Below, one piece after another: positions 1-64,000 of a stretch of DNA of 64,000 bases; position 1 is the first letter of the stretch; each line of letters opens with the position of its first letter. The translations under genes were made by a program, and so were the position numbers. This DNA comes from Mantamonas sphyraenae STR306. Lineage: Eukaryota > Protista > CRuMs. Under the pieces are notes generated by a model that saw nothing but the letters and a program-made list of their open reading frames with translations, did not search any database and was not told the DNA's origin. The stretch covers positions 378,058 to 442,057 of the forward strand of contig JAPMXV010000053.1 of the NCBI GenBank assembly GCA_026936335.1, in the 5' to 3' direction.

Positions 1-1045
1 GGCCAAGTGGTTGCCGGGCGCATGGACAACTCGTACAGTGTATTCTTGATGCAGATGTCCCTGGTGAAATTCCGCGGCCTGGCATATGAGGTTTCGCACG
101 CGGACGTGGTGCCGCTTCAAGGGTTCCGTGAGCACCCGGAGATGCCGGGCATGCTGCTTGCTGTGAACAAGAAACACGGAATGTGTGTGGCCATGGATCT
201 GGAGGGTGACGAGATCCAGTATACAGTGCTGCTGGACGGTCCCGGATCGCACCGCCGTGCGGAAGGAATCGCACCCGTGCATGGCAAAGCGGCCGAGTCG
301 GTGTGTGACTCTGCTCGCCCGGGACGCATGGGATCGGTGATGCTGTTGCGCAGCAACGGCACGGTGTCTCATTGGGTACTGGACCGCGACGGTGTGGACA
401 AGGAGAAGATGGCTGCGCTGGCTGGGAAGCGCGCGGCGGCGGCGGCGGCAGACAAGGGCAAGGGCAAGGCAAATACCAAGGCTGAGAAAGGCAAAAGAAG
501 AAGAAAAAGGCGCCAGAGGTGCCGGATCGTAGCGAGAAGCCGACTGTGCGCGGCATGGCGACGGCGCGCAAGTCGACGGGTGGAAAGGCGCCGCGCAAAC
601 AGTTGGCGGCCAAAGCAGCCAAAGCAGTGCGGAAAGAAGCGCGTGCGTACGCACATGGGGAGGAAGATGTGAAGGCGCCGATGTGGAGCGACGACTTTGA
701 GGACGAGGAGCCTGAGGAGAAGCGAGGCAGCCTGTTCAAGACGATGCGTGCGAGGCAAGCAAGCAGGGACTCGGCCGCCGGGTCGGACTCGGAGCCGGAG
801 GATGGAGAAGAAGAGGAAGAGGAAGAGGAAGAGTATGAGATTGACGAGGTCGCGGATGGCGCCGATTTGGACGGCGGGGCGGCAGTTAGTCAGCGAACGA
901 TGCATCTGTTGCACGAGGCCGAGGGTCGCGGCGGGAATCCATTTGCCTCTGTGCCGAAAGCAAGCTCTGGGAAGACGTCACTGTTTGGTGGAGTCAAGAG
1001 CGGGGAAAGGAGCACGGGATCTTTGTTTGGAAGCCGCGGCGCCGT

Positions 1046-1083
<38 letters not shown>

Positions 1084-4000
1084 GCATGCAAAGACAGGAT
1101 TGGGGTGCGCCAAACATGTCTGAATTGGCAATGACGCCGTCGATGAACGACGTGGCACGCAACGAGGGTGTAGCAGGTGGACCGGAGTTTGCAAAGGACT
1201 TCTTTGAGCGACTGCCTGTGATCACATCGAGCGTGGAGCTGAGCTCCACAAAGTTGAAAGCAGATGGGGAGGATTTGAAGAATGCGATGCAGAGGTACGG
1301 ATACATGGGCATCGGGGGCGGCGAGAGCATGGATCTCCAGATTGCGTGCGATCCGTCGATGGTGATTGTCGGCGTGCAGCTGTACCTGTACAGCGAAGCC
1401 GGTGTGATCGGCTCTGTGAGCGTAGAGGGGGAGCGTGTGGTGCCTGTGCGTGCGTACAGGGACAGGCGCGTTCTGGATGTGCCGTTTACAGCGGCGGAAA
1501 TCCTTGCGTCTCCGCACCATGCCACGCTGGAACTGCATCCGCGATCGCAGACATCACGACGCACAGCCATCGAAGGCCTTCAGGTGTATGGAGTTCGTGC
1601 GAGTGAGTTTAAGCTGGCAGAGAAGGTTGCTGCGCTTGAGCGTTTGGAGGCTGAGCGAAAAGCTGTGCAGAAGCGCCTGCGTCGCAAGGTGCCACAGAGT
1701 GCACTGGAGCGCAGCGCAGTGCACGTGCTGCGTATGGCGACTGCATACTTTCTGAAACAGCCGGATGCGCTTGCCGGCGATGGGATGGTGAAGTGGAAGC
1801 AAACTCTGCCTCACAGTCTGAGCCAAGTGTCGATGCTGGTGGTGCACGAGAGCCTGGAAGAGCTGCTGAAGGCGATGCACGACGACGAGGAGAACTTCCT
1901 GCGCACAAAGGACCTTGTACACCTGGAACACCTTGTGCAGCAGCTGTCGGCGTCGCCCGTGTCGTCGCTGGCGGGAACGATGTCGTTGGCTGAGCTGAAG
2001 CACTTGCTGGCAAATATGGGCGCCATTGCACGCGAGCGTCCTCTTAACTTTGGGGCTTTCCTGAAGGAGCATGGGGAGGTCCCGTCCGTGCTTTGCGACC
2101 TGCTGGTGGCGGTGTACGAACGGCGAGCGCTACATGGGGAACAGGTTGTGTCCGCAGTCGAGTCGTTGATGGATGTGCTGTATGGCAATTTGCGTCACCT
2201 GTGGCAGGAATGCATCGACACACATGGCGAGACGGCAAAGGTGCACGCAGTGGCGAGCATCGAACCGGGAATGGCGTTGGTTGTGCGCATGGTGACGTTT
2301 GCATCGTCGTACAAGGTGCGTGCAGCTGCAGACCGGGCGCTGTTCTCTGCGGTGCTGCACACGCTTGCTCGAGAGTCGCACCTGCTGCGGCTGTCGGAGG
2401 ACGGCGTGGTGGGCGGCGAGGACGAAAGTGACATCGGTGTGGTGAGCAATTTGTCAGAGGCCATTCTTGCGTGCCTGCTGAAGAACCTTCCGAGTATGGT
2501 GCACCTGGATGGCGAAGTTGCGTTGAACTACATGCACCTTGTGTCTGCGATGCTGTCCAGTTCGCCTTCGTCTGTGCTACGTGACGTGCGGCGCTTCGTC
2601 GCATGCGGCGTGCAGTTGTTCAAAGACGGTGATACCGTGGCGAGTGGGTTTGTTGGGCACAGTGCGCAGCAGGATGTGGAGCTCATGCTGCTGCAGCTGG
2701 TGCACAGCGTTTTCAAGACACAGCGACGTTGGGAGCGAGAGGCACAGGGTACGGGCGAGGGCAGTGGCGCTGCGAAAGCCAAGACGGCCCCGCGTGTGGT
2801 GGAGCGTTTTGAGAATGTGGTGGAGCGTCTGCGAGTGGAGCTTCACGAGACGGGCCTTGCGCAGACTTTGCTTGAAGCAGCGCAGAGCTTGTTTGCGTAC
2901 TGCGCGTCGCAGAGTGACGACTGGACGGGCGGAGTGGAAGAGAACGAGGGTGGCTTGAGCAGCTTCAAGCAAGCTCTGCTGAGCAAGAAGCGCGAGACAC
3001 CGCCTAGCAGCATTCCGCCGTTCTTTGGAGTGGAGCACGTACGGAAGTACGGGGACGACTTGTTCAAACCGTTCCGACAGATGTACCTGAACGTGCTGCT
3101 CAAGTCTGCGAGCGACTACTTTGGCGTCGTGTGGAAGGGAGTGCGTGAGCGGCACGGCGGCGACGAAAAGAGCGAAACGGTCGAGTCACTGGACGAGACG
3201 GACGCAGCGCTCTTCCACGGCTGGAAAGCGCTGGCGTGCCGTGTGATGTATCAAAGCCAGACGGAATTTGCGACCGAGGCGGCAAAGAAGCTGCTTCTGC
3301 AGCTGACGCGCAAGCGCAGTGCGTTCAACCGTGTGCGCGACTCGTTTGTGCTGGGGCAGGAGAGTGACAAGCTGATGGAAATCGGGTCACGCAGCGAGCA
3401 ATTCACGGGGACAGTGAGCTATGACGACATTGCAGATACGATCGAGTGTGTGACTACGCTTGCTTCGGTGGCAAAGAAGCGGCCGGAGAACTGGCAGGCG
3501 TTTTGTGCTGAGCAGCGTGAGATGCCTGTGTTTCTGTGTCACAGCATGTTCCACATGGTGGAAAAGGCAGTGCTGCCGATGAGCCAACTGCTTGCGTTGC
3601 TGTTTGAAAGCAGCAGCGAAGAAAGGAAACCGAAGGGCAGCGGCGACGGGAGCACGCGCAGCGCAAGTCCGCTTCCTACGCTGGAGAGTGAAGCATCCAT
3701 GGACACGTCTGTGGCAAGTGTAATGAGCAGCGGGGGCGACGAGGACGATGACACGGAGGGTGGTGCGGAGGCTGCGGTGGATGTGGCATCGCTGGTGGAT
3801 GGTGATCTGATGCATCGTTTCGTAAGTGCGTTTATGTTGGAAGTGCGCAACGTGGAGGTGCGGATGAACGTGCGCGATTTCATGCTTGGCGTGTGGAAGC
3901 GAGCAGACAACGAGCAACGAGCTGTGCTGTTTGAGGTGGCTGGCGACTTGCTTGCGAGCCTGCCGTCGTACGGAGTGAACGGCCTGAGTGCAACGGAGCT

Positions 4001-7000
4001 GATGGCGTACATGGTGAGCGATTTGGGCAACAAGGGGACGCAGAGTGGCTCGTTTGCGCTGGACAAGTGGCTGGGCCAGGTGATGGAATGTGTGCAGTCG
4101 CAAAATGCACTGGTGAGCGAGCACAGCCACTCGGGCCTGTATCAAGCACTCGGGCAGGTGCTGGACCTGGGCGGATACTATCTGGAAAGCCAGCCGTGCT
4201 TGGTTTGCAACGACCCAGAGGTGCCGTTTAAGCGCATGTCGTTGGACATGGTGCGTGCAGAGATCAGATACACGGACAGTGCGATGATCACACGCTTCCG
4301 ACAGAGCCTGGCGATCGAGAGTGTGATGGGCACTGTGACACCGCAAAAGGCGGGCAAGAGCGTGCAGACGTTGAATGTCTATTACACGAACCGCACAGTG
4401 AAAGACTTGGCGGAGCTGAAAACGATGAGTGCAAGCGGAGTGGATGTGTGGAAGAAGGCCAAGAGCGTGCGCCTGAAGCCGCGACAAACCGAGGTGGCCA
4501 TCCACTTCCCGGAGCCAATTCTGGCGTCGAACCTGATGATTGAGTACGCGACGCTGCACGAGGACGTGCAGTCGCTTGCCCAGGAGAAGCTGATGTGTCC
4601 TCGTTGCGGCAGGCATGTTCCAGACCGGTTTGGCAACTGCAAGAACTGCGGCGAGAACGCATACCAATGCAGGCAGTGCCGCAACATCAACTACGAGAAC
4701 CTGCAGGCGTACCTTTGCAACGAATGCGGTCATTGTCAGTATGCACGGTACGACTGGTCCCTGAGTCAACGGCAGAATCTGGGCACAGGAGTGATTACGA
4801 CCGACAGCGAGTACGAAGAGGCACTGGAGGCGCTGCGAAAGGAGACAGTGATGACAGACAGGCTATACAAGCAGCTGGGTGCGGAAATCGAACCCCTGAT
4901 GCAGATGATCAATGATGACGGAAGCGAAGAGGCGCGGGAGGCGGTGGCAAAGGCATTGGTTGACGCGGAGGGCGAAGGGAGTTCGGAGTCTCTGGTGCGC
5001 AAGAACATCCGAGGGCTGAGTGCAAAGTATGGCAGGCGTTGCCGCCAAGGGTTTGGTATGCTGAGCAAGCGTGTGCAGCTGCTGATTTCCATTCGGCGGG
5101 AGGTGGTGCGGTACGTGAACCGCAGCGGAGGTGGAGGCGGACATGGACATGAGGGAGGCAGTCGCCCTGCGGCAATGCTGGACAACAGGTGTTTTGGGTG
5201 TGCAAACAACTTCCTGTCGCAGATTGTGATGCTTCTGGAGCAGCTGGCAATGCAAAAGGAAGCAGGCGACAAACTGGTGAAGCTCGGCATTGTACAGGAG
5301 CTGATGGAGCACAGCATGTACCACAGCGACGTGGAGGCGCGCAAGCGTGCACGCAGTGTCATTTGCCAGTTTGTGCGCGGGCGTCCAGAGGCGCTGAATG
5401 TTGTGCTGGAGCACATTTCGTCCAAGATCCGCCTGTGCCTGGCCAACTGGTCGCGTCTGGATGTGCGCACGAGCGTACAGAACGAAATGACGCTGCTGAG
5501 CGAGTTGAGCGTACAGGCGGAGCAGCAGTGGGAGCCGCTGCTGCGTGTGTGCGTCGAGGAGCTGTTGCGAGCACTCGCTGCCGGCTATGACAAGCCCGCC
5601 GTTGTGGATCACATTGTGCGGCCGTTGCTGGCTGTGGTGCACAGATACTGCGGTGGCAAGCGCGGAGAGAATGGCGATAGCAGCAGTAGTAGTGGTGGTG
5701 GCGGTGGTGGTGGTGGCGGTGGCACCAGCGGCGACTCGGAGGGAGCGACGACGTCCTCGAATACGGTGGGTGGCGAAGCAGTTGCGAGTTTGCCTGTGAT
5801 CTCGACGGCAGGATGGCTGGCCGGCAGCGCAGAATTTGCGTCGTGGAACACGGGTGAGTTGCAACAGATGAGTGGACAGCAGGCGAGCGCGTCGCAAGGG
5901 TTTGCCCTGATGCAGAGGCTGTTGTTGAACCGATGCAACGAAAGGGTGCGCGAGATGGCGTTGGACATGCTGATGGCCGTGGTGACGAGCAATGGGTCTC
6001 TTGCGAATCGCCTGGGGGTGCTGAAGCAGCTGATGGGACTGATGGAGAGCGCGCAGGAGCAGCAGCTGGGAGGGGCAAGCAGGCAGCTTTTTGAGGGCAT
6101 TGCAGAGGTGAGCAAGGGCCATGAGGAGGATGTGTGGGCGGCACTGTCCAAGGAGGGCAACGTGGAGGTTCTGTGCGCGCTGATTGTGAAAGAAGTGCAG
6201 GGCATTGTAGCTCTTGAGGGTCAAGTGACGGCCGACTTTGAGCAAGGGTATGTGCTGGCGGCTCTGGTGGACGTGCTGATGCGCATGCTGGGCGTGGAGA
6301 GTGTATTCGAGCACTTTCAGCGTGAGAAACAGGTGCACCGTGTGCTGGAAGCGTTCCTTGCGCTGCGCGGTGTGATTGGCCAAAAGACGCGGTTGACGGA
6401 CACTGCGCTGAAAATGCTGGAGGCACTGATCCAAAGGGTGGTGGAACAGGGTGAGGAGGCGCAAGCAGAGTACAGTGCAGGATGTGTGGCGGCGCTGAGG
6501 AAGCAGCGTGGGGGACGCAAGTCGCGTGCGCCTGTGTTTGTGTACGAGCAGCTGTGCAACCTGATGTGTCCGGTGAAGCCCGATCCGGTGTACGAGCTGC
6601 AGCTGGACAAGTCGCGCACGCAGGAGGAATTTATCCGAGGAAGCATGACGCACAATCCGTACCGTTCGGACACGCTGGGCCCACTGATGCGTGACGTGAA
6701 GAACAAGATCTGCCTGGATCTGGAAATGGCTGGTTTGATTGAAGACGACAACGGGATGGAGCTGCTGGTGGCCGGGAACATCATCAAGCTGGACCTGCCT
6801 GTGAAACTGGTGTACGAGCAGGTTTGGGTGCCGCATTTCCGGGAGCGACACGGTGAGGAGGAGCGCGTGAGTCCGATGCGCGTGGTGTACAGGCTGCAAG
6901 GCTTGGACGGAGAGGCGACAGAGCCGGAGGTGGACTCGCTGGAGGAGGAGAGTGGAGAGGAACGCGACCCGGAAGAGGAGTTTGCGCTGACGGGCGTGAT

Positions 7001-9215
7001 GAGCGAGTGTGGAGGGTTGGAGTTGATGCTGGAGCACCTGGGAGGCATTGAAAGCTTCGAACAGGAACGGGAGCTGGCCAATGTGCTGTTGCGCCTGCTG
7101 GACGCTTGCTGCAAGGTGCGGGCAAACCGACGGGAAATGCTGCGCCTGGGTGCCGTGAGCGTGCTGGTGCGCACGCTGATGGTTGCGTTTGTGCGAGAGG
7201 AGGATGCGCCGTTTGCAGAGGCGTTGTTGTTGATCATGGGACGCGTGGTGCAGGAGGCCAACGTATCGCTGACGCGCTCGAGCAGTGTGAACACGGAAGA
7301 GCTGCGACAGCTGCTGCTGGAACACACGAGCGGCGAGAGTGGCGAGGGAGGCAAGAACGAGTCGGAAGAGAGCCACTCGTATGTGGAGCAGCTGCTGGAA
7401 CAGATGTCGAGTGGCATGGTCAAGAAGAACGGCAAGGTGCGAGAGGCGCTGAACAGCGTGATCTCGTTTTTGACGTTTGGAGAGGCACGCAGCATGACTT
7501 TGCTGTACAAGCACTTTGTGGATGTGATGGATTACGAGGCGTACGACGAGGCGCTGTACGCAGACGAGTCACACACACACAAGCTGGAATGCCTTGCAGA
7601 ACTGTGCGAAAACATCTCGCTGGACGCAAACGGGTCGAAGCTGAAGGACCTGTTCTTGGTGGAGGGGTCGACGAAGCGAGGCATCGAGTACTTGGTGGAT
7701 CGCTTCCCACTGAAGGAGGACCGGGAGAGTGCGACGTGGCAGGCGTCGCTTGCGGCACCTGCTCTTCCGTACGTGCTGCGCATCCTGAGTGGACTTGCGC
7801 GAGGACATGAGGCGACACAGGTGTTGCACATGGAGATGGGCGCGCTGAAGGTGCTGCAGCGACTGGAGGGAGTGTTTGCAGAAGGGAAAATCGGGTCGCT
7901 CGCAGAAAACCTTGTGGAGAGCGTTTGCTTTGCAAACACGGAGACACAAAGTGCATTTGAAAAACTGAACAAGGCACAGGAGGAGAAGAAGAAGAAGCGA
8001 GCGGAAGCGCAGAGGAAGAAGATGATGGCGGCGATGAACATGTCGTACAGCAAGGAAGGAAAGATCGTGGCAAAGAGCGGCCTGCTGGAAGACGACCTGG
8101 AGGAGGAAAGCGGGAGCGTGTGCATGGTGTGCCAAGAAGGGTACAAGTACCGCCCGGAGCAGGTGCTAGCCATCTACACATACAGCAAGGCTGTGGACGG
8201 GTCGCGCGGTGGGATGAGCAGCGTGTCGCATCTGAACATGATCCACATGGAGTGCCACGACGCAGCAGTGGAAGCAGACCGACGTCTGAAGAAGCCGAAG
8301 CGTGAGTGGGAGGGTGCAGAGCTGCGTAACCAGGGCACACGGTGCAACAATCTGCTGCCGACATACGGAAAGACGGTGCCGGAAGGGGCATACGAGCAGG
8401 CGAGCACCCGCTACTGGCAACGGGCGAATGAGCTGGGTGTGGTGATGGGCAGTGCAGGGCAGTACGGGGCGATGATGAACGACCTGACGTACCTACTGAT
8501 GAGGTTTGGAAACAACGAGTCGTTCAGCGTGGATGCACACGGCGGAGGGCGGGAGAGCAACCTGCACTTTGCGACGTACATGGTGCAGCACGGCCTTTAT
8601 CTGTTGCACAAGAGCGGGCGGCTTGGAGAAGTGCAGGCAGACATGACGACGTATCTAGAGACAGACGAGAGTGGCTGGGCAAAGTATGTTGGCCGGAACG
8701 AGGACCACGACGTGGTGCGGTGTGTGTCAACGTTGTGCTGCATGTCTGCCGAGACGTGGGCCACACATCGCATGCTGATCCTGAAGCGGTTGATCCGCTT
8801 TGCGGCGACGACGAGCACGCACATTGCGAGCGTGTCCAGCAGCGAGAGCAGCAGCAGCAGCAGCAGCGGCAGTGGTGGCGGTGGTGGTGGTGAGCAGAGC
8901 CTGTCGGAGAAGGTACGGCCGTACTTGGTGCTGTTTGCACTGGTGAACAGGTTGCAGGAAGTCATCAAGCCGCAGGGCAAGGTGAAGGGAGAGGATGACG
9001 CGTGGCTGGAGTCTGCGCTGACCTATTCTCGGGAGAACGAGGAAGATGTGCGCAAGCAGGTCCAAGAGCTCTTGTCAGACTATGAGGACGAACTGGTGTA
9101 CTTGGAGGCGCCCATGGAGTTTTTCGATGTGATTGGCGTGCTTGGCGACGTCATGGGAGAGGGCAGTGACGCAGATGGGTTTGTTTCGCGATGGGCCGGT
9201 GAAGAGAGTGGATGA
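1..9215 (+). CDS. UBR4: UBR4/BIG/p600-family giant E3 ubiquitin ligase, C-terminal ~3,070 aa; 5'-truncated by the window; 1-nt frameshift at ~493-496 joins frame +1 (1-494) to frame +3 (495-9215)
   Basis: Hallmark UBR4/BIG motifs: GYYLESQPCLVCNDPE, Cys cluster CPRC..NCKNCGENAYQCRQCRNINYE..LCNECGHC, DKSRTQEEFIRGSMTHNPY, EDDNGMELLVAGNIIKLDLPV, YRLQGLDGEATE, hemi-RING CMVCQEGY..HLNMIHMECH, EWEGAELRNQGTRCNNLLP, GGGRESN. Frame +1 upstream reads like the preceding beta-propeller region. Confidence 0.93.
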
Positions 9216-9336
9216 AGAATGGCAGAGCAGCCCCCCTCCTACCCTCTGCTGAAATGATGCGACGTTGAGAGGTTCAGTTCTCTCTTGCAATCAGTGCAGT
9301 CCGATGCTGCGCCGAGCGTGCCACGCCTTTGACAAC

Positions 9337-9344
9337 ATGTCCTC

Positions 9345-9391
<47 letters not shown>

Positions 9392-12300
9392 ATGGGATGG
9401 AGACGGAGGAGAATGAAGAGTTCAACAACGGGTTCATCCGAGTGGTGGGCGCTGAGCAGCACAATCTGAAGAACGTAGACGTGAGCATCCCAAAAAACCA
9501 AGTTGTGGTGATTTCAGGCGTGTCTGGGTCGGGAAAGTCGTCGTTGCTGTTTGACACAATCACGGCAGAGAGCAGGCGGCAGCTGATAGACACAGTGAGT
9601 GAGATGGGATGTGGGAGGGAGTATGGTGAGAGGAAGAAAGCGGGACTGCCGCACTGCGACGACGACACAACGAGTTCCCGAGAACCTGTTTGGCCGGAGG
9701 GAAAGTGGGTCTCGAGAACACGCAGGAGGTGCTGGCGGGCACACAAGGTACACACACTCACACGTCGGTCGCGTTCAATTCCAAGTTCTCTGCATTTGCT
9801 CGACAACGCCTGCCCAAGGTGAGCCGACCGGCCATGACGTCGATTGAAGGCATTGGCGCCTGCATTGCCATTGACCAAAAGGCACTGGGCACGAGCTCAC
9901 GGTCGACCATCGGGACGACAACCGAGGCATGGAACTTTGTGCGACTGCTGTTCAGCAAATGTGGCACGCCGCCGCTGCCAGATGGGTACTTTGCGTTCAA
10001 CAAGCCGACGGGAATGTGCAACGGGTGTTCCGGCGTCGGAATGGCGTTTGAGCTGAAGGAGGACACGCTGTTTGACATGAGCAAGTCGCTGAAACAAGGA
10101 GCCATCCTGCATCCAGACTACAAGACCACAGGGTGGTACTTCAAGAGCGTGCGGCTGTCGGGCCTGTTTGATCTGGACAAGAAGCTGCGCGACTTTACAA
10201 AGGAAGAGTTTGAGCAGCTCAAGTGGATGGACCCGGTGAGCGTGGACGTGAAAGAGGGAGACTTTGCGTTCAACATGACGGGTGTCTGCAAGAACCTGAA
10301 GAGACGTCTGGGAGCAAACGAGAACCTGCACAAAAAGTGGTCCGAGTACATCGAACGGGCCACGTGCTCAGACTGCAAAGGCTCGCGCCTGAACCAACAG
10401 GCACTGTCGGTGCGCTTGAACGGCAAGAACATTGCCGAGGTGTCGCAGATGGAGATCGGGCAACTGGTGACGTGGTTGGAAGATTGCCGCGTGGACGACG
10501 TGACTCGTCCGATTCTCAGGCGGCTGCTGTCCATTCTGAGCAACATGACGTTGCTCGGTGTGGGCTATCTGTCGCTCGGACGTAACATCGGCACGCTCAG
10601 TGGCGGCGAGTCGCAGAAGATCAAGATGGCGCGGCAGTACGGTTGCGATTTGACGGACATGATGTACGTGCTGGATGAACCTTCGGTGGGCATGCACCCG
10701 AAAGACCTCCTCAACACGATGCGTGTGATTGATCAGCTGAAACGCAAGGGCAACTCTGTGCTGCTTGTGGAACACGAGCCACTGGTGATCACGGCTGCAG
10801 ACTACCTGGTTGAGATCGGCCCTCGCGCAGGGCGGCACGGAGGGCAGTTGATGTTCAGCGGCACGCCTGCGGAGATGCGCGAGGCTTATGCATCGGGTAC
10901 ATTGGAGACGGCAACAGCGCGAACAGTGTTTGGTGCGGAAACCGAGTTTCTGCCGTGGACCACGAGCGAGACGGCGCAGGAGTTTGCAGGCATGTTGGCG
11001 CAGATGCGCAAACTTCGAGAGGAGCACATGCGTGACAAGAAGCACGTGGGCGGTGAAGCAAGTGGCAAGCAGCGTGGGCTGACAGAAGCGTTGGCGATGG
11101 GAGACGGGTTTGAGGAGGCCGTAGCACAGATGATGTTTCCCGTGTGTGGAAACATCGACTGGCGCTTCTTGGATGGGGAAATCGTGGCACGTCGCACGTG
11201 GGAGGATTCGTATGTCGTCAAGGCGGCGGAACTGAACAACCTGAAGCGGCTCACAGTGGAGATTCCGAGGGGAGTGTTTTGCGCGCTGTCGGGCGTGAGT
11301 GGAAGTGGCAAATCGTCGCTGATGCAGGTGTTTGCACAGCAAGTGGAGGACATTGTGTTTGTCGATCAGAGCTCGATTGGAAAGACCAGCAGGTCGTGTC
11401 CGGCAACGTACACGGACGTGTTTACGCTCATCCGCAAGGAGTTTGAACGGGAAACACGTCAGAAGGCAAAGGTGTTTTCCTTCAACAGTGCAGGAGCATG
11501 CGACGAGTGCAAGGGGAGCGGGTCGCTGACGATCAACATGAACTTTCTGGACGACGTCAGCGTCCAGTGCCATGTGTGCGAAGGAAGGCGGTACAAGGAG
11601 GAGGTGCTGGGATACCTTGTCAAGGGACACTCGATTGCCGATGTGCTGGACATGACGGTGAGCGAGGGTCTGGAGCTGTTTGCGGATGTTCCAGCAATCG
11701 CGACGAAGCTGGAGCTGCTGCAGGAGATTGGCCTGGGATACATCCAGTTGGGTCAAAGCGTGTCAACAATCAGTGGAGGAGAGGCACAGAGGTTGAAGCT
11801 GAGCAAGGAGCTGAACAAGAGAGGCAACACGTATGTGCTGGATGAGCCGAGCAGCGGACTGAGCGTGACGGATTTGCAACCGCTGATCCGCCTGCTGCAA
11901 CGACTTGTGTCGCAGGGCAACTCGGTCATTATCATTGAGCATGACTTGCATCTGCTGCAGTTTGTGGACCACATTATTGAGCTGGGACCGGACGCAGGCG
12001 AACAAGGAGGCTTTCTTGTTTGCCAGGGCACTCCGGAACAAGTTGCGTCGTGTGCACACTCGTACACAGGACAATTTCTCAAGCACATCCTGAGGGCGTT
12101 GCACAAGCGAGTGACGAGTGACGTCAACTCGTTGGAAGGACTGACGAGCGACACAAGCATTGCCGGGCAGCACGGGGGACACGCGGGCGGACATAGGACA
12201 AAGAAGGTACGCAAAGGCAGCAGTGGAGGACGCTCGAAGCGCTCGCGCAAGGAGATGGACGACGACGAGGCGTTTGTGGCGGACGACGACGACGACGACG

Positions 12301-12539
12301 AACAGCAACTCAAGTTTGACGAGGAGGACGAAGAAGAGGCGGAGTTTGACGAGGACGAGGACGAGGACGACGATGAAGATGGTGGGATGACCCTGGACCA
12401 AGGCTCGCCAGACGATGACTATCGCGGCAGCGTGGATGTCAAACCGTCGGGAGGCGGGCGCCGATCGACGCGACGCACACGCAAACGAGTCAAGTACAAT
12501 GAGGATGAGGATGAGGATGAGGATGAGGATGAGGATTAG
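9337..12539 (+). CDS. uvrA: Excinuclease ABC subunit A-like ATPase, class II (UvrA2/DrrC-like). Exons 9337-9594 and 9786-12539
   Basis: [37 protein letters not shown]; the GTGAGT..CAAG intron (9595-9785, phase 0) restores ESRRQLIDT|[10 protein letters not shown]. Two ABC modules ([19 protein letters not shown]; [31 protein letters not shown]) and CxxC zinc pairs. Confidence 0.92.
9346..9390 (+). repeat. (AGC)n coding microsatellite giving poly-Ser at the UvrA N-terminus; similar tracts at ~1046-1082, ~22012-22059 and ~23933-23968
   Basis: Trinucleotide runs directly visible and read as Ser in the coding frame. Confidence 0.9.
12501..12536 (+). repeat. (GAGGAT)6 coding repeat giving the ED tail of UvrA
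   Basis: Hexamer run directly visible before the TAG. Confidence 0.9.
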
Positions 12540-12559
12540 GAATGGAGTGGAAACTTCTC

Positions 12560-13849
12560 TCACGACTCGTTGGGAGACTGTGTGCGGAAAAACTCAGACT
12601 CGAACTCGTCGATGAACTGGTTGCTCAGTTCCCAGAGCTTTGTGTTGTTCTGGTCGGTTGCAAACGGGTTGATGATGTGCTCCATGGTCTTGAAATCTTG
12701 CCAGTAGGTGCCCGGGTGTGTGATGACATCGTCGGAGGTTGCACCGTGGGTGCAGCCGAGGGCACCCGAGTCTGCCGAGCGTGCGACAAGCATGGTAAAA
12801 AAGTTGGTGATGAGGCGCAAAGGTCCATCGATGCCGTTCCAAATGCCAGTGTAGACGTAGCCCGGGTGGTTGCAGCTCCAAATAAGGCGTGTGGGGGGGG
12901 CTTCAGGCAACTGCTGATACTGTGCGTCGCTGCGTTTCTGGCCCTCGATGGTAAACATCGTGTTGAGCAGTTTGGCTTGGGTGTACAGGAGGGCTCGGGA
13001 GACTCCCGGATTGGCTTGGCGCAGTTTGTCCCAGCGCACACCTTTGGCGAGGTGTTGGCCGTAGGAGGCCTGGTTGACAATGCGGCCTGTGACTCGCGTC
13101 TTGCGGCCTGTTTCGTCACCCGGCTGGGTGTAGAGCATGGTGGCCCACAGGAGCTTGGTGAGGTAAAAGTGGCCCAGGTGCATGGAGGCGAAGCTGTAGT
13201 CGAAGCCCTGTTTCGTGGCGGTGGTGGGTGGGAACGAGCCAGCGTTGTTCACCAGCACATGCAGTTCGTCATACTCGTCCTTGAACTCGGTGGCAAAACG
13301 GTACACACTCTCAAGATCCGAAGTGTCCAGCTGCTTGACGATGGCAACGCCGGTGGTGTTTGTCATGGTGTCGATGACTCTGCGTGCCTTTTCGCCTCGC
13401 TCGACGCTGCGGCAGGCCATGATCACGGTGTCTGCACCTGCCTGGATGAGATTACGCACGACCCAAAAGCCTATGCCGGCGTTGGCTCCGGTGACGATGC
13501 ACACGGCGCCGTGGAGAGAGCGGTAGTTTGGCACGGCGGAGAGGTCGGACGGGTCGAGCGTGTACTTGAGGGAGGCAATGAGGAGGATGTTGACGACCCA
13601 TGCGGTGAGTTTGGCAGGCATGACGTCGAGATCAGGGTTGAACCAAGCGACGGCGTAGACGATGGGCAGGCTGAAGACGGCGACGACGAGATGAAAAGCC
13701 AACTTGAAGGTGTGGCCCCAGTCGTTGAGGATGTAGGCCTGGAGCTCAGGCCAGCGAATGGCAAGGTACAACAGAGCCACATACCACACCAAGACGGCAA
13801 TCCCCTCTGCGAGGACGGCTCCAGGCAGGTCTGGGAGCGATTCGAACAT
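12560..13849 (-). CDS. Short-chain dehydrogenase/reductase (RDH11/12/DHRSX-like) with N-terminal transmembrane segments, ~429 aa
   Basis: CIVTGANAGIGF Rossmann motif, LHVLVNNAG, HLGHFYLT, YTQAK (YxxxK), HPGYVYT. Start taken at MFESLPDL because the upstream part of the listed ORF overlaps the PAP2 gene. Confidence 0.88.
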   Translation of the reverse strand: MFESLPDLPGAVLAEGIAVLVWYVALLYLAIRWPELQAYILNDWGHTFKLAFHLVVAVFSLPIVYAVAWFNPDLDVMPAKLTAWVVNILLIASLKYTLDPSDLSAVPNYRSLHGAVCIVTGANAGIGFWVVRNLIQAGADTVIMACRSVERGEKARRVIDTMTNTTGVAIVKQLDTSDLESVYRFATEFKDEYDELHVLVNNAGSFPPTTATKQGFDYSFASMHLGHFYLTKLLWATMLYTQPGDETGRKTRVTGRIVNQASYGQHLAKGVRWDKLRQANPGVSRALLYTQAKLLNTMFTIEGQKRSDAQYQQLPEAPPTRLIWSCNHPGYVYTGIWNGIDGPLRLITNFFTMLVARSADSGALGCTHGATSDDVITHPGTYWQDFKTMEHIINPFATDQNNTKLWELSNQFIDEFESEFFRTQSPNES

Positions 13850-13970
13850 TGTGTGGCCGGAGAGTTGTTGGTTGTGCGAGCGCAGACGTTGCACAGAGGG
13901 AACGGGAGGGAGTGTGGATGCAATGGCGCAATGAAATGTGTGGAAAACACAGGGTGACCAGGACTGTACT

Positions 13971-14567
13971 TCATGGGCGCATGGCAGGGAGCATGGCGTC
14001 GAGCTGTGCAAGATGAGCGGGTTCAACAAAGCCCCACAGCCATTGGAGGATGGTTGCATAGGTTGTGCCCAGGGAAAGACCAGCGATAACGTCCGAGGTG
14101 TAGTGGCGGAGGAGGAGGACGCGTGTGGCGGCAATGAGGGCGACCCAAAGTGGAGCGAGCTGGCGAGCCCAGAGCGGGAGAAGGGGATGGAACCAAAGAG
14201 CGAGGGCGACACTCCACGCTGCATGGCCACTGGGAAAGGACTTGACATCAGGGCCAAGGAAAACCTTTGCGTGCTCGCGGAATGGAGGGCGTGGACGACC
14301 GACGACAGCCTTGAGGGCGCCGCTGGTGGCTGTGTGGACCACAAGGAGGGCATTGGTTTGGAAGATGAGTTCGAGGGCAGCGTTGTCCGGAGCCAGCCAG
14401 TGACGGGAAAACACAGCGGCGAGGAGGATGACAACCCAGACCCAGCCGTCGGCCGTGGTTGAAAGGAGCTCGAGGAGGAGGAGGTACGGGGTGCCGAGCG
14501 TCTGGAAGAGGGAGTGTGCTTTGTCGGTGATCCATGCATCGACCGGATTGTCCAGATCGATGGCCAT
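13971..14567 (-). CDS. PAP2-superfamily lipid/polyisoprenoid phosphate phosphatase (PLPP6-like), 198 aa
   Basis: Three PAP2 motifs: KAVVGRPRP, SFPSGHA and TRVLLLRHYTSDVIAG; hydrophobic helices. Confidence 0.9.
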   Translation of the reverse strand: MAIDLDNPVDAWITDKAHSLFQTLGTPYLLLLELLSTTADGWVWVVILLAAVFSRHWLAPDNAALELIFQTNALLVVHTATSGALKAVVGRPRPPFREHAKVFLGPDVKSFPSGHAAWSVALALWFHPLLPLWARQLAPLWVALIAATRVLLLRHYTSDVIAGLSLGTTYATILQWLWGFVEPAHLAQLDAMLPAMRP

Positions 14568-14638
14568 GGTGGCTCTTGAGAGAAGGGCTGGGCCGAGGGC
14601 GGCGCGTCCGCCACGGAAACCCCTTTTTGTCAACCATC
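14568..14638. promoter_or_regulatory. Putative compact bidirectional promoter (PAP2 / COX6B); analogous spacers at 18824-18884 (WDR44/TMEM258) and 20275-20346 (prefoldin-like/CaMK1)
   Basis: Divergent start codons only 61-72 bp apart; inferred from gene geometry only. Confidence 0.5.
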
Positions 14639-40700: not shown

Positions 40701-43700
40701 GATGAAGGTCAGGGCCTTGGGCAGCACGAGCGGAGTCAACTGCGCGTCGTTGCTGATCACGTTGCCAATCACGGTGACGTCGACCGCGTCGCCAAAGGGA
40801 CCGGTGTAGAAGACGCCGGTGAAGTTGGCGATTCCATCGAGAGCTGCCTTTTCGTACGTGGCTCCTTGTGTGTACCGAGACACCAGGATGCGCACGAGCA
40901 CATCCGATGTGTTGACCCTGTTGCCTGCTGTGTCGATCACTTCGACTTCGGGCTGCACAGGGAACGGTTTCTCCGCCGAGTTGCGGTTGTCGACGAACAA
41001 GGTCATGTTGCGAACAAAGCGGAAGGTGTGTGCGGGTCCATGCACCACCGTGACGCTGCTGCTGGTGGGTTCCAGGCCGCTGGCGGTGTAGGCGAGTGTG
41101 TACGTGCCAGCCGTGGGGGTGATGCGCACATCGGCAAAGTCCACCTGATAGCCATTTGCAGCCGAGGCCACACGCGACAGAGTGCCAGCGCGCAGAACAC
41201 GCCGTCGCTGCTGCTCACAGAGATCGTTACAGAGGGCAGCTGGGCGTCGACAACGAGCTGCGTGCCGGGCGATGTGGGCGTGTTTGCGTCGAGGGCGTTT
41301 CCGCCTGCATCCACAACACGCACTGTCACGCCGTTGACAGGCACATCGGCTGCGTTGCTGCCTGCGTACGTCAGTGTTTGTTTTCCACCGCCCTGTACAA
41401 GCAGATGTTCGGCAACGCCGCTGGAGATGTTGACCTGTACCAGTGCAGGCTGCAGGTTGCCTTGTGTGACCACCAGCACATGCACGCCAGCACGCGGGCG
41501 CAACAAGCGCACTCCGTCGATGGTCACCACGCCTGCCTGCATGGTGTATCTGACACGTCCGGCCAGAATCGGCGTGGCCAGAGGTTGCCGGTTTGCATCC
41601 AGGGCGCCTGGACCGCCGCTCTGCACGCTGACGTCGATCTCGCGAGAGATCGTGTCTGTGTCGCCCACAGCCTCTCCTCCCGCATCGTATGCGCGCACTG
41701 TAAACGAGCTGACAAGGGAAGAGATGTTGCTGGTGGCTGTCACTGCCGAGGTGGTGCTGGAAAGGCGTGCAGCAGGCCCAACCACAATGCGCACGTGTGA
41801 TTGGGCGCTGATCAGTCCTGGCGCACGGTACTCGATGCCATACACGCCCAAGGGTGGGGAGAGCAACGCCAGCGAAGCAAACACAGCCGTGCCGTTGCGC
41901 ATGCGCTCGACAGAACCCGTGCTGCGCAGCGTGGCGGTGTTGTTCAGAAGGACAGCCGTGATGTCCTTTTCGTTGGGATGGTCGTACACCCACGAGCCGC
42001 CGGCATCTTTCTGTCGAATCTGCACAGTGGCCAGTAGGGACTCGAATGTGGACGATCGTTGGGAGAGCGGGTTGAATTCGCTCACGAGCGTGTGCGGCGG
42101 CCCAACGGTAACCACAACTGCGAGGTTCACTGGGATCCACGTGCGCGAGGCAAAGAAAGTAAGCGTGTACGTGCCGGCAGGTGGCTTTAGGAGCACCACC
42201 GACAAGTTGGCGTACGAAGGGAGCACAAATCGAGCAATGTCACCCTGCAACACGCCAGAGTTGTCCACGCTGACGTCCACAGAGGTGAGACCACCTAGAC
42301 TGCTTGTTTCCACACCCCCTGCGTCAAGGGCAGCCACAATGACGGGTTCAATGGTCACGGCGTCCACAGACGCGTAAACGAGCGTGGCAGGGGCCTGGCG
42401 AATGCCAAGACTCTCTGCCAAACCCTGGGTGACGATGACATCCACAGTGGCATTTTGGAGACCTTGCGAGGAGAAATGCAAGGAGTGTTGGCCTTGCAGA
42501 CCTGTGCGGATGGTGAGAGTGCGGAAAACGGCGTCCCCGTTCACTGTGGTTTCCGACGTACCCGAAGGCAGATCCAAAGACTGCGACCACACCGACACGG
42601 TGCGATTGAGCACGTCCAAATTACCAAGGGTGTTGTTGGCAACGTCGACGACACGCACAGTGATTTCTGGGACGGTGTAGAGGCGGGTAGAGGCGAACGT
42701 GCGCTTCCAGGCCGTGACCAGTGCGAGGGCACGTGGCTGGCCAACTCTCACGGTGACGTTGGCGGTAGTTGGGGCCAATCCAGTCATGTTGAACACAACG
42801 CGATACGTTTGTGCCACAGGAAGCGTTAAGGACATGTTTGCAAACACCGCAGCGCCGTTGGAGACGCTCGATGGGAACACGGTTGCGAAACCTTGGATTT
42901 GGGCCGCCATCGTGCCGATGTAGTCGGTGACAACATTGTTACCGGCGTCCACGACAGACACAGAAATGGAAGGGACCGCTGTTGTGGTCTCGGCCGGGGC
43001 ATACACATGCTGGGGCACAACGCGGTCCAACCTCACCGCTGGCCCTGTGACAACCTGCACGGCCACATCGCCGCTTTGGAGGGATGCAGCCGAGAAGCGC
43101 AGTGCATACCAACCGACAGCAGGTGCAGAAAAGGCCACTGTGGTAAAGGTGGCGTTGCCTGCGGTGCTATTGACGGGCGTCAGGCCCGTAGCAACCAGTG
43201 ATGCGTTCAATGTCTGGACGCTCACCAAACGGTGCGACGCGTCAAAGGAGCCCACAGCGTTGCCTCCGTTGTCGTAGAGGATCGCTTGGATCGGTGGCAC
43301 GGGACTGCTTGTGCGCGACGGCACGGTGGCTGTGATCGGGGGAACAACAATCTGTGTGGGAGGGCCAGGGTACACAGAGAGCGACACGGTGACATTTCGC
43401 AGCGCATATGCAGACATGACGATGCCGTAAGAGCCGATGGGAATGCGTCCCGTGAGCTTGAGATCGGTGAAGGACACGCGGCCAGAGTTGGCGTCGACTG
43501 GTTTCGTCAGCGTGCCCTGCAGAGTGACGCCAGCGATGGAGACATTCAATGCAGCGTGCACGTGCACATCACCCGTGGTCACGGTATCGCCTGCGTCTCG
43601 AAGCTCCACGGTGATCGCAGGCAGAGGCACAGAGGCGATGGACGCGTAGGAAAGGGTCGTCACGGGGGCAATGCGAGTCAGCGCGTACGGCTGACCCACA

Positions 43701-46700
43701 CCCACCTGGACAGCCACAGACGTATTGCGCAGACCCTGCGCGAGGAACCACAGCGTGTAGGAGCCGTTCTGTGGCGATTGCAGGGCAAGATCGGAAAACA
43801 CGGCGCGGCCAACCATGCTGGTGACCACCTGGACGCCCACGAGCACACCACCAGCGCTGGCAGACGCGCTCACAGTGCGGTTGAGTCCATCGAGTGCACC
43901 CAGCATGTTGTTGCCAGCATCTACGACGCGCAAGTCGACGGCGCCCAAGGCTGAAAACACACGGCTTTCAACCACCACAGAGGCACTGGCAGGCGAGTGC
44001 ACCACCAGCGCTGTAGGCGGTCCCGTGATCACGTCGATGGTCATGTCGACGGAGAAGAGACCCGTGCTGGCGAAGCGCAGGACGTACCGGCCGACGCGAG
44101 GTGTTGTCAGAGTCAGGTCTGCGAATGGATGAGTGGCGTTTCGCTGCAGCGTACCCTGCAGCTGGGCAAGCTGTGTGCTGTTGAGCAGTTGCACAGATGC
44201 GTTGCGGGCAACCATCTGTGCGGCGTCGACAGCGTTCCCTGCTGCATCGCGGCCGATCAGAAGAGTGGCGTTGATGGGCGTGTTGAGAACCGCGTGGACA
44301 CTGCCCAGGTGGGCAGAGGGCACATCCAGAGACACGACCTGGCCCGGTACAATCTCCAGGGCCACCGATGTGTTGAGAAGAGATGCTGCATAGAACACAA
44401 GGGAGAAGTTGGCTGTGGGCGGGCGCAGCAACTGCAGGCCCGTCAGCGTGGCCACACCGTTGGTGACAGAGACAGACGTGGGACCAGATGTCTGCAGCGC
44501 AGCAGGAACGTCCACGTTGACGATGATGTCAGAGGCCGTTGGCACAAGGGTCCCCGCGACATCTCGAGCCTGCACCGTCACTGCACCCAGCGCAACCTGC
44601 AGGTTAGTTGCAAGCGACTGGGCGGCGCCAGACACAACCGCCAGCTGAAAGGGAACACCCACCGTGACGCGGATGGACACAGAGACATTGCCTAGCAGCG
44701 GACTGTGGAAGTTGAGCGCGTAGTCGCCAGCCACAGGCTTGAGCAACTGCACGGCGTCAAACACGACCACCGCGCTCGTGGCAGTCACATTGAGCGTGCC
44801 AGCGAGGTCCAATGTAGCGTTGGCGCCCGTCAAGAAGAGGTTCTGGCCAGCAAAGCGAGGCGCGGAGACAGCAGTGCCGCTTGCGTCGACGGCTGTGAGG
44901 CGGATGGTCGGTGCTGCGGTCACAGCTGCGGCCTGCACGGTGGAGGATGTGGTGAACACTGCAAGCAGACGCAAGGGCAAGCCGCCGTTAACTTGCACGC
45001 CCACCGTGGCAGTGCCGACGTTGGGTGTGCTGACACGAAGCACATACGCACCCAGAGCAGGTGCTTGCAGCGACACGTTGGCAAACGAGGCCAAACCGTT
45101 GACGAGCGTGGCTGTGGTCGTGCTGGTTACAGTTGCACTCGGTTGCAGCGCCAGAGTGAGCGTGCGGTTGCTGTCGCTGACGATCGTGTTGTTGCCTGCA
45201 TCAAAACCTTGCACCGTCAACGCGCCCAGGTAAGCGGTCTGCGCAGTCTCGACGCTGATCGACACCGGGGAGACGATGCGAAGGGTATGGATGGGACCCA
45301 CCGAAACGTTGAACGTTGTGGTGAGCACGGGAAGCCCAGCTGTGTTCAGCTCCACCGCATACACGCCGGCCACAGGGGATGCGAGTGCGAGCGAGGACAC
45401 AGAGACGTTGCCCTTCAGCATGGTCTCGGACGAGGAGCCGAGTTGCACTCCGTTGCTGTCTTTGATCTTGATCAAGACAAGACGATCGACATCGAGGCCC
45501 ACGAGCGAGTTGTCACCGGCATCGCGTGTTTGCACCGAGATCGTGCCCAACGATGTGGACACACGCGAAAGCACCGTGGCCGGCAGGTTGAGCAGAGCCA
45601 TGTGTGTAGCAGCGCCCGGAAGCACTTCTACAGTGACATTTGCGCCGATCAACCCGGTCGCACCAAACTGCAGCGTGTAGTTGCCTCGCGCAGGAGAAGC
45701 CAGGCGTGCGTTGTCAATGGTAGCCGCACCACGGTTACTGAGAGCCGAAAGGACACCCTGGAGCATTGCCTGGTGCGGCGACGGGAGCGACGCAGTGACG
45801 GTGACGGGTGAGACGCTCGTGGTCGTGCCACTTGCATCTTGCACGGTCACACTGACGGCAGGCAGAGCAGTCAGCGCGGAGCTGCTCACTTGCAGGGACG
45901 TAGGCGACGCCACAAGTTTGTAGGGTGCACCACTGGAGATGGTCAAGGCGATGGTCGCGTTGACGAGACCCAGCGTACCCACCTGGAGCGTGTAGGCATC
46001 GGGGACGGGCGCAGCCAGAGTGGCACCAACAAACTGTGCAGCACCTGCAGCCTGACTGTACGTGGTGGCCACCCGCACACCTCCAATCACGTCGAGGACC
46101 ACGGTGCGGTTGAGGGTGTCGAGGCCACCCAGTACGTTGTTGCCGCCGTCGCGCACAACGACGCCGATGGTGGGCAGAGCCACGGAGACGCTTGTGTCGA
46201 GGGCCAACGTGTTGTCGGTGTTGTTCAGCGTCAGCTTTGTTGGGGCGCCATGCACAATGTTCACCGAGGTCTGTGCCACCACCAGAGCAGGAGACACAGA
46301 CGCCACAAAGGTGTACAATCCCACCGTGGGTGTGGTCAGGGACAGGCCCGTAAAGTTGGCCACTCCTTGCACCATGGCTGTGGACGCAGTGCCCGCAAGT
46401 GCCGTGGCGGTCACGTCCACACCGTTGAAGTAGACAGTGAGGGTGGCCGACGTGGTTGTGGTGTCATTCGACAACAACGTCTCGTTCTGGTGGTTCTGTG
46501 TGGCGACGGTGATGTGCGGCAGGGCCACGCTTGCGGTTGCGTTGACATCGCCCAATCCGCCCAAATCGCTCAGCAGTGTCGTGTACTCGGGCGTGGTCAC
46601 AAACATGCCATGCACTTCAAACTCATACAGCCATCCGCCATCTGTGGCTGTCACAAGCGTGCCCATGGCTCCCTCGCTGTTGTTGAATCCGACGCGGAAA

Positions 46701-63823: not shown

Positions 63824-64000
63824 TTAGGGTTAGGGTTAGGGTTAGGGTTAGGGTTAGGGTTAGGGTTAGGGTTAGGGTTAGGGTTAGGGTTAGGGTTAGG
63901 GTTAGGGTTAGGGTTAGGGTTAGGGTTAGGGTTAGGGTTAGGGTTAGGGTTAGGGTTAGGGTTAGGGTTAGGGTTAGGGTTAGGGTTAGGGTTAGGGTTT
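63824..64000 (+). repeat. Telomeric repeat (TTAGGG)n, ~29 copies, with the G-strand oriented to the chromosome end
   Basis: Perfect TTAGGG array up to the window end, preceded by variant TCGGG-TTCGGG at 63807-63817. Confidence 0.98.

Follow-up and report, generated by a model that had tools for sequence, protein, structure and literature searches.

The last 64 kb of contig JAPMXV010000053.1 of the protist Mantamonas sphyraenae STR306, a stretch of 64,000 nucleotides (positions 378,058 to 442,057) referred to here as the window, contain a gene for a UvrA-type protein. The genome assembly comprises 25.06 Mb in 78 contigs. The sequence reading gives two exons with a total of 1003 codons and no interruption. 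The gene is located between the open reading frame (ORF) of a UBR4/BIG E3 ligase, with the stop codon 121 bp before the ATG of the UvrA gene, and a convergent ORF with a short-chain dehydrogenase (SDR) domain, with the stop codon 20 bp from that of the UvrA gene, and the contig ends in TTAGGG telomere repeats. This placement between eukaryotic genes on a telomere-capped contig had been described in a first-pass annotation, which was made from the sequence of the window, and it holds. The gene is a real, domesticated, and horizontally acquired gene for a class II UvrA in the nucleus of a protist. Its features and those of its surroundings are listed in Table 1.

Exon 1 encodes a poly-Ser N-terminus and the start of the nucleotide-binding domain I (NBD-I), and exon 2 encodes the remainder of NBD-I, the insertion domain, NBD-II, and a C-terminal tail. 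In an NCBIfam profile search, residues 34 to 85 of exon 1 matched positions 2 to 53 of TIGR00630, with a UvrA equivalog match of 70 bits at profile positions 4 to 57, and a six-frame profile search of the assembly aligned the start of exon 2 (window position 9786) with position 55 of the same profile. Exon 1 ends at profile position 53/54 and exon 2 opens at position 55, which means that excision of exactly the nucleotides 9595 to 9785 restores the frame and a gapless UvrA. When the frame of exon 1 is continued without splicing, it enters non-homologous sequence and reaches a stop codon at 9820-9822. An intron at this position had been suggested by the first-pass annotation; its GT-AG ends and the continuity of frame and profile upon its removal agree with that suggestion, and splicing at 9595-9785 is predicted on this basis. 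Two further candidate introns in the window have GTGAGT or GTAAGT at the 5' end and CAG at the 3' end. An alternative start of the UvrA gene may be the in-frame ATG at position 9304, which is 33 nt upstream of position 9337 in the ORF 9265-9822 and would add 11 residues, beginning with MLRRA. The two alternative starts may lead to differently targeted isoforms.

Table 1. Coordinates of the UvrA gene of M. sphyraenae, of the motifs encoded by it, and of adjacent features in the window
Feature	Position	Strand	Remarks and evidence
Possible alternative start, in-frame ATG	9304..9336	+	Adds 11 residues
Exon 1	9337..9594	+	86 codons from ATG 9337
Walker A I, GVSGSGKS	9517..9540	+	In exon 1; motif scan
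Intron, spliceosomal type (predicted)	9595..9785	+	191 nt, GTGAGT...AAG, length not divisible by 3
Exon 2	9786..12539	+	917 codons plus stop codon at 12537-12539
Junction replacing zinc module 1 and UvrB-binding domain	9960..9995	+	About 12 residues only; alignments to 3pih versus Ecm16
Zinc module 2, CNGC (residues 78-81) and CSDC (residues 194-197)	10017..10376	+	Around the divergent insertion (DNA-binding) domain; Cys columns invariant in alignment A1
Signature I LSGGE and Walker B I MYVLDEP	10596..10682	+	Alignment, motif scan
Lineage-specific linker between the ABC modules	10902..11195	+	About 98 residues; predicted to be disordered, pLDDT <50 at residues 385-457
Walker A II, GVSGSGKS	11292..11315	+	Alignment, motif scan
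Zinc module 3, CDEC...CHVC	11499..11579	+	Cys columns invariant in alignment A1
Signature II ISGGE and Walker B II YVLDEP	11769..11849	+	Motif scan
C-terminal tail	12111..12536	+	About 142 residues of alternating basic clusters and extended Asp/Glu runs; predicted to be disordered, pLDDT <50 at residues 786-917
UBR4/BIG E3 ligase ORF	519..9215	+	PF13764, 816 bits
Convergent ORF with SDR domain	12560..14614	-
Telomere repeats TTAGGG	~63824..64000	+	Contig end

For the assignment of the protein, the two exons were searched separately, and folding and tree reconstruction used exon 2, so that 54 conserved N-terminal residues are absent from the trees and from the model. The Pfam search recognized the generic ATP-binding cassette (ABC) ATPase domain alone and gave no match of the window protein to PF17760, the UvrB-binding domain. 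Among the NCBIfam profiles, the UvrA equivalogs far outscored all else: exon 2 reached 636 bits with NF001503 and 616 bits with TIGR00630. The curated cut-offs for class I, 1147 and 729.8 bits, respectively, were not reached, with the exons being scored apart. The matches of exon 2 in the PDB were to UvrA structures only, at 387 to 527 bits, with the UvrA of Thermotoga maritima (3pih) at 527 bits, Ecm16 (7sh1) at 514 bits, and UvrA2 of Deinococcus radiodurans with the lowest score of 387 bits.

The alignments to these structures locate the difference to class I. Residues 2 to 66 of the query aligned with residues 58 to 122 of the class I chain 3pih and residues 59 to 366 with chain residues 257 to 560. 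The chain residues 123 to 256, a portion of about 135 residues with the UvrB-binding domain and zinc module 1, have no counterpart in the protist protein. The alignment to Ecm16, on the other hand, was contiguous with no skipped domain. The first-pass annotation had described a complete UvrA with two ABC modules and without the UvrB-binding domain, which is confirmed by the intact Walker and signature sets of both modules and by the domain skipped in the alignment to 3pih. It had also described the sequence as running directly from RLLFSKCG into the following segment. Both segments are present, with 7 residues between them.

Zinc modules 2 and 3 are formed by four CxxC pairs. Both Walker A motifs, both Walker B motifs with DEP, and the signatures LSGGE and ISGGE are kept. 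Exon 2 conserves 112 of the 127 columns that do not vary among 27 bacterial homologues. The other 15 columns mostly have conservative changes, with His693Ser and Trp729His among the exceptions. The D-loop of NBD-II reads DEPSSGLS (exon 2 residues 683 to 695, window 11832-11870) versus the GLH that is invariant in 27/27 bacterial homologues. The insertion domain profile PF17755 scored 15.6 bits versus a cut-off of 23.2 bits, with a folded region of the right size predicted at this position, at a predicted local distance difference test (pLDDT) value of 80 to 94. In the AlphaFold model, which was built from alignment A1 of the homologues, the core had a pLDDT of mostly >80, and a 90-residue linker between the modules and the last approximately 130 residues were disordered. 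A Foldseek search with this model returned UvrA structures only, the tightest being Ecm16 (root mean square deviation 2.6 Å, template modeling score 0.82) and D. radiodurans UvrA2. The C-terminal tail is absent from every bacterial homologue in alignment A1, and the linker (residues 366 to 475) had no match among 5.8 billion proteins.

For the trees, exon 2 was combined with short UvrAs found by a word search, six annotated plasmid-borne class II genes, and named class I UvrAs from GTDB. A set of 63 rows and a set of 31 rows, the latter under LG+C20, were used, and approximately unbiased (AU) tests were done under LG+G4. Class I formed a clade with a support of 100 in the 63-row tree and 100/100 in the 31-row tree, and the protist UvrA was outside of this clade in both. 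In the 31-row tree, it was nested in the group of short UvrAs with a support of 90/85. Here, a polytomy holds the protist UvrA, the Ecm16-type clade, the Logan protein P0008, which is 47% identical, and a clade with many paralogues of about 750 amino acids. The Ecm16-type clade had a support of 100/100 without the protist UvrA and was anchored by a plasmid protein of Deinococcus ficus (1237 bits to Ecm16) and a Streptomyces plasmid protein (754 bits). None of three placements was rejected by the AU tests, neither at the stem of class I (p = 0.49), nor as sister of the Ecm16-type clade (p = 0.64), nor among the remaining short UvrAs (p = 0.47), and the likelihood of the sister placement was marginally above that of the free quick tree. 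A search for related loci in the genome contigs of GTDB returned almost only class I UvrAs, which were used as outgroup and not as donors.

By architecture and by tree position, the sequence of the protist gene is that of a class II UvrA. The first-pass annotation had assigned it to a class II UvrA2/DrrC type: the class is supported by the missing domain and the 90/85 node, and the protein does not group with the class I clade when compared with the UvrA classes, whereas the polytomy and the AU tests speak neither for nor against the narrower DrrC type. Horizontal acquisition, which had been proposed as well, is borne out by a gene of bacterial origin that has an intron and the codon use of its host.

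The close homologues of the protein are all bacterial or archaeal, with a best identity of 47% to bacterial sequences and of at most 47 to 50% to any database sequence. The composition of the gene is that of its present surroundings, the UBR4 gene and a set of SDR and WD-repeat genes. Its GC content at third codon positions (GC3) was 0.717 in the core compared to 0.70 to 0.78 in the neighboring genes, and its relative synonymous codon usage correlated with that of the neighbors by 0.78, which equals the correlation of the neighbors among themselves. This fully ameliorated codon use indicates a long residence under selection. None of the extensions of the protein, namely the N-terminal poly-Ser stretch, the linker, and the basic/acidic tail, occurs in the bacterial homologues. 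The locus is single-copy in the assembly, with the remaining matches being generic ABC ATPases of about 30 bits. Judged from these sequence features, the gene is of bacterial origin and now part of the nuclear genome. Horizontal gene acquisitions are common among protists. The UBR4 protein of the host was only 36 to 38% identical to the best eukaryotic UBR4/BIG proteins from animals, plants, and EukProt transcriptomes, which indicates an isolated host lineage without close sequenced relatives. That no eukaryotic orthologues turned up, the linker being without a match, may thus just be due to the sparse sequencing around this lineage, and a date cannot be given for the transfer.

UvrABC is regarded as the prokaryotic excision system, and eukaryotes rely on the unrelated xeroderma pigmentosum (XP) proteins. 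The first-pass annotation had noted neither a uvrB nor a uvrC in the window, and a profile search extended this result to the entire 25-Mb assembly: UvrC had no match and UvrB gave only generic helicase C matches of about 30 bits, with bacterial controls being positive in 12 to 14 of 14 genomes. The genome does encode Rad4/XPC and three XPG-N nucleases, which indicates that the host possesses at least a part of the eukaryotic excision machinery. The profile XPA_C had no match in the genome, but as it did not match any of the controls either, this negative is uninformative.

The preferred interpretation of these data is that a nuclear gene of bacterial origin in a deep-branching eukaryote encodes a class II, UvrB-independent UvrA that acts on DNA, with a probability of about 0.7. 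As in bacterial UvrA proteins, the protein would dimerize and clamp duplex DNA in its ventral groove, and ATP binding and hydrolysis would discriminate distorted from normal DNA, as in other members of the family. The protist UvrA should not be able to load UvrB, and its output must be something else. It is the genome without UvrB and UvrC alone that would imply a UvrB-independent activity. Two options, rated as equally likely and each well below even odds, can be put forward tentatively. The protein might displace non-covalent, helix-distorting ligands in an ATP-driven reaction, as Ecm16/DrrC does, although stripping of drug intercalators is an analogy only. Alternatively, it might mark lesions for repair enzymes of the host, as proposed for UvrA2 of Deinococcus and glycosylases of base excision repair (BER).

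Where the protein would act can be judged from its extensions. Three clusters of Lys/Arg residues at the C-terminus fit the pattern K-K/R-x-K/R of nuclear localization signals (NLS). These NLS-like clusters of basic residues, as well as the acidic tail, favor an action in the nucleus, which is thus probable, and the clusters together with the acidic runs suggest a chromatin-facing protein. An extension of this idea would be a bacterial sensor rewired for chromatin: a class II core with NLS-like clusters and an acidic tail resembling that of histone chaperones would scan nuclear DNA, and it would either remove DNA-binding toxins of bacterial prey or competitors or pass distorted sites on to factors of BER or nucleotide excision repair. 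This is a doubtful possibility, but if true, the rewired UvrA would represent a repair or protection route undescribed in eukaryotes.

An import into mitochondria, starting from the upstream ATG at 9304 and serving to guard organellar DNA, is less plausible and rather unlikely. Bacterial-type repair proteins of eukaryotes are often organellar, and the MLRRA start followed by a Ser-rich stretch resembles a presequence. However, acidic residues (METEENEE) follow soon after the start, and three C-terminal K/R clusters plus very long Asp/Glu runs are typical of nuclear or chromatin proteins.

It is very unlikely that the gene is a decaying relic of a transfer, no longer expressed or functional. 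Such a relic would explain the long branch, the divergent insertion domain, and the loss of the otherwise invariant His in the D-loop of NBD-II, but not a frame of 1003 codons uninterrupted over two exons, the 112 of 127 invariant columns that were kept, including all catalytic residues and zinc ligands, and the fully ameliorated codon use. A class I UvrA that dropped its UvrB-binding domain after the transfer, when UvrB was not available, is slightly less probable still. The score with 3pih, as high as that with Ecm16, and the class I stem placement, not rejected by the AU test, would be compatible with this scenario; nevertheless, the class I clade with its support of 100/100 excludes the protist UvrA, which is nested among the short UvrAs, and the boundaries of the deletion are the same as in class II, with zinc module 1 gone together with the domain. 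Finally, bacterial contamination or a chimeric assembly with a non-chromosomal UvrA ORF would agree with close homologues that are all bacterial or archaeal but is excluded for practical purposes by the GT-AG interruption exactly at the profile junction, the eukaryotic genes adjacent on both flanks, the telomere, GC3 and codon usage equal to those of the neighbors, a top bacterial identity of only 47%, and a poly-Ser stretch, linker, and acidic tail that are foreign to the bacterial homologues.

Evaluation of the interpretation as a nuclear, UvrB-independent, DNA-acting class II UvrA needs to consider several points that weigh against it. The branch leading to the protist UvrA has a length of 1.05 to 1.48 substitutions per site, and the sister group and the donor lineage are not pinned by the trees. 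The insertion domain is divergent, as judged by the PF17755 score below the cut-off, and the His693Ser exchange in the D-loop of NBD-II means that the communication between the ATP sites or the ATPase cycle may differ. The upstream ATG with its MLRRA start leaves room for a mitochondrial targeting. No biosynthetic cluster or drug-related genes are located beside the UvrA gene. Splicing, expression, and chromosomal linkage are predictions from the sequence.

Other observations concern the surroundings of the gene. With the stop codons of the UvrA and SDR ORFs being only 20 bp apart (12537-12562) and the UBR4 stop 121 bp before the UvrA ATG, the intergenic regions are very compact, and the 3' untranslated regions must overlap. 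The UBR4/BIG ORF contains at window positions 555-626 the stretch TARKSTGGKAPRKQLAAKAA, which is near-identical to the N-terminal tail of histone H3 and could be a substrate mimic or a bait for readers. One ORF with 4827 codons and no interruption is located on the minus strand at positions 41003-55486.

The locus represents a well-anchored transfer from a bacterium to a protist whose lineage has no closely related genomes sequenced, and intron, tail, and codon use are the marks of its domestication. It is also a natural experiment on the action of a class II UvrA without excision machinery, by displacement of drugs or hand-off of lesions, which is unsettled even in bacteria.

Compared to known systems, the protist UvrA shares the fold, the ATPase motifs, and the DNA-binding groove with the class I UvrAs of Escherichia coli, Bacillus stearothermophilus, and T. 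maritima. It differs from them by the absence of the UvrB-binding domain and zinc module 1, by its position outside of the class I clade, and by a genome without UvrB and UvrC. The definition of class II followed here is that of PMC9328131 and PMC10192343.

More similar are the short UvrA paralogues of about 750 amino acids of Bacteroidota, Marinimicrobia, Bacillota, and others, many of them plasmid-borne and named "uvrA2," which have the same architecture, are on the same side of the tree, and are 41 to 47% identical to the protist protein. Unlike the protist gene, these are bacterial, without introns and tail, and of uncharacterized function, and none of them can be named as donor. UvrA-like genes were found in 917 plasmid records of PLSDB (E <1e-30) from Ralstonia, Enterobacter, Acinetobacter, Streptomyces, lactic acid bacteria, and others. 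Some are class I genes on large replicons, and the short class II form is common as plasmid cargo, often annotated plainly as UvrA. In bacteria, class II UvrAs occur widely and are mobile. UvrA2 of D. radiodurans (2VF7/2VF8), which contacts several BER glycosylases and was proposed as a hub (bioRxiv 10.64898/2026.06.04.729788), has the lowest score among the UvrA structures and differs in that it coexists with a full UvrABC system.

Ecm16/DrrC of Streptomyces (class IIa; 7SH1) resembles the protist UvrA in its two ABC modules, in the presence of zinc modules 2 and 3, and in the lack of both zinc module 1 and the UvrB-binding domain, and Ecm16 is the closest structural match. Ecm16 prefers DNA loaded with echinomycin, a substrate that stimulates its ATPase. 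It requires ATPase activity and its own insertion domain, which sets the drug specificity, and protects E. coli even without uvrA, uvrB, uvrC, or uvrD (PMC9328131, PMC10192343). This independence of UvrB, UvrC, and UvrD fits a genome without UvrB and UvrC. In contrast to Ecm16/DrrC, the protist gene is located outside of a biosynthetic gene cluster and in a eukaryote, with no demonstrable place within the Ecm16-type clade; it bears an intron and encodes a divergent insertion domain plus an additional linker and tail. In the Ecm16-type clade, the UvrA-like protein on plasmid pDFI2 of D. ficus (376-2769) is, with its high score to 7SH1, a near-orthologue of the echinomycin self-resistance protein outside of the actinomycetes; its gene adjoins one with a DNA polymerase domain and a radical SAM/SPASM gene.

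Literature searches on UvrA in protists or on its lateral transfer gave nothing relevant, with one apparent match being UVRAG. A transfer of uvrA from a bacterium to a eukaryote is rare yet not unprecedented. In a few fungi, according to Urquhart and colleagues, a uvrA of bacterial origin, described as close to homologues of Gram-negative bacteria, is part of the cargo of Starship elements, where its neighbors are the ssf cluster for formaldehyde resistance and a homologue of rad4 (PMC10104507, PMC11623301). The fungal gene is mobile cargo, whereas that of the protist is positioned between housekeeping genes and has an intron and lineage-specific extensions. No fungal protein was among the best 120 matches of the protist UvrA. 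The two transfers were apparently independent events, as judged from the published descriptions of the fungal genes and from the matches, the location, the intron, and the extensions of the protist gene. Both cases share a lone bacterial uvrA in a eukaryotic nuclear genome without UvrB and UvrC. A conserved, intron-bearing, and host-adapted UvrA without UvrB and UvrC means that the sensor subunit alone can serve a eukaryotic cell, and the fungal Starship uvrA concurs with this.

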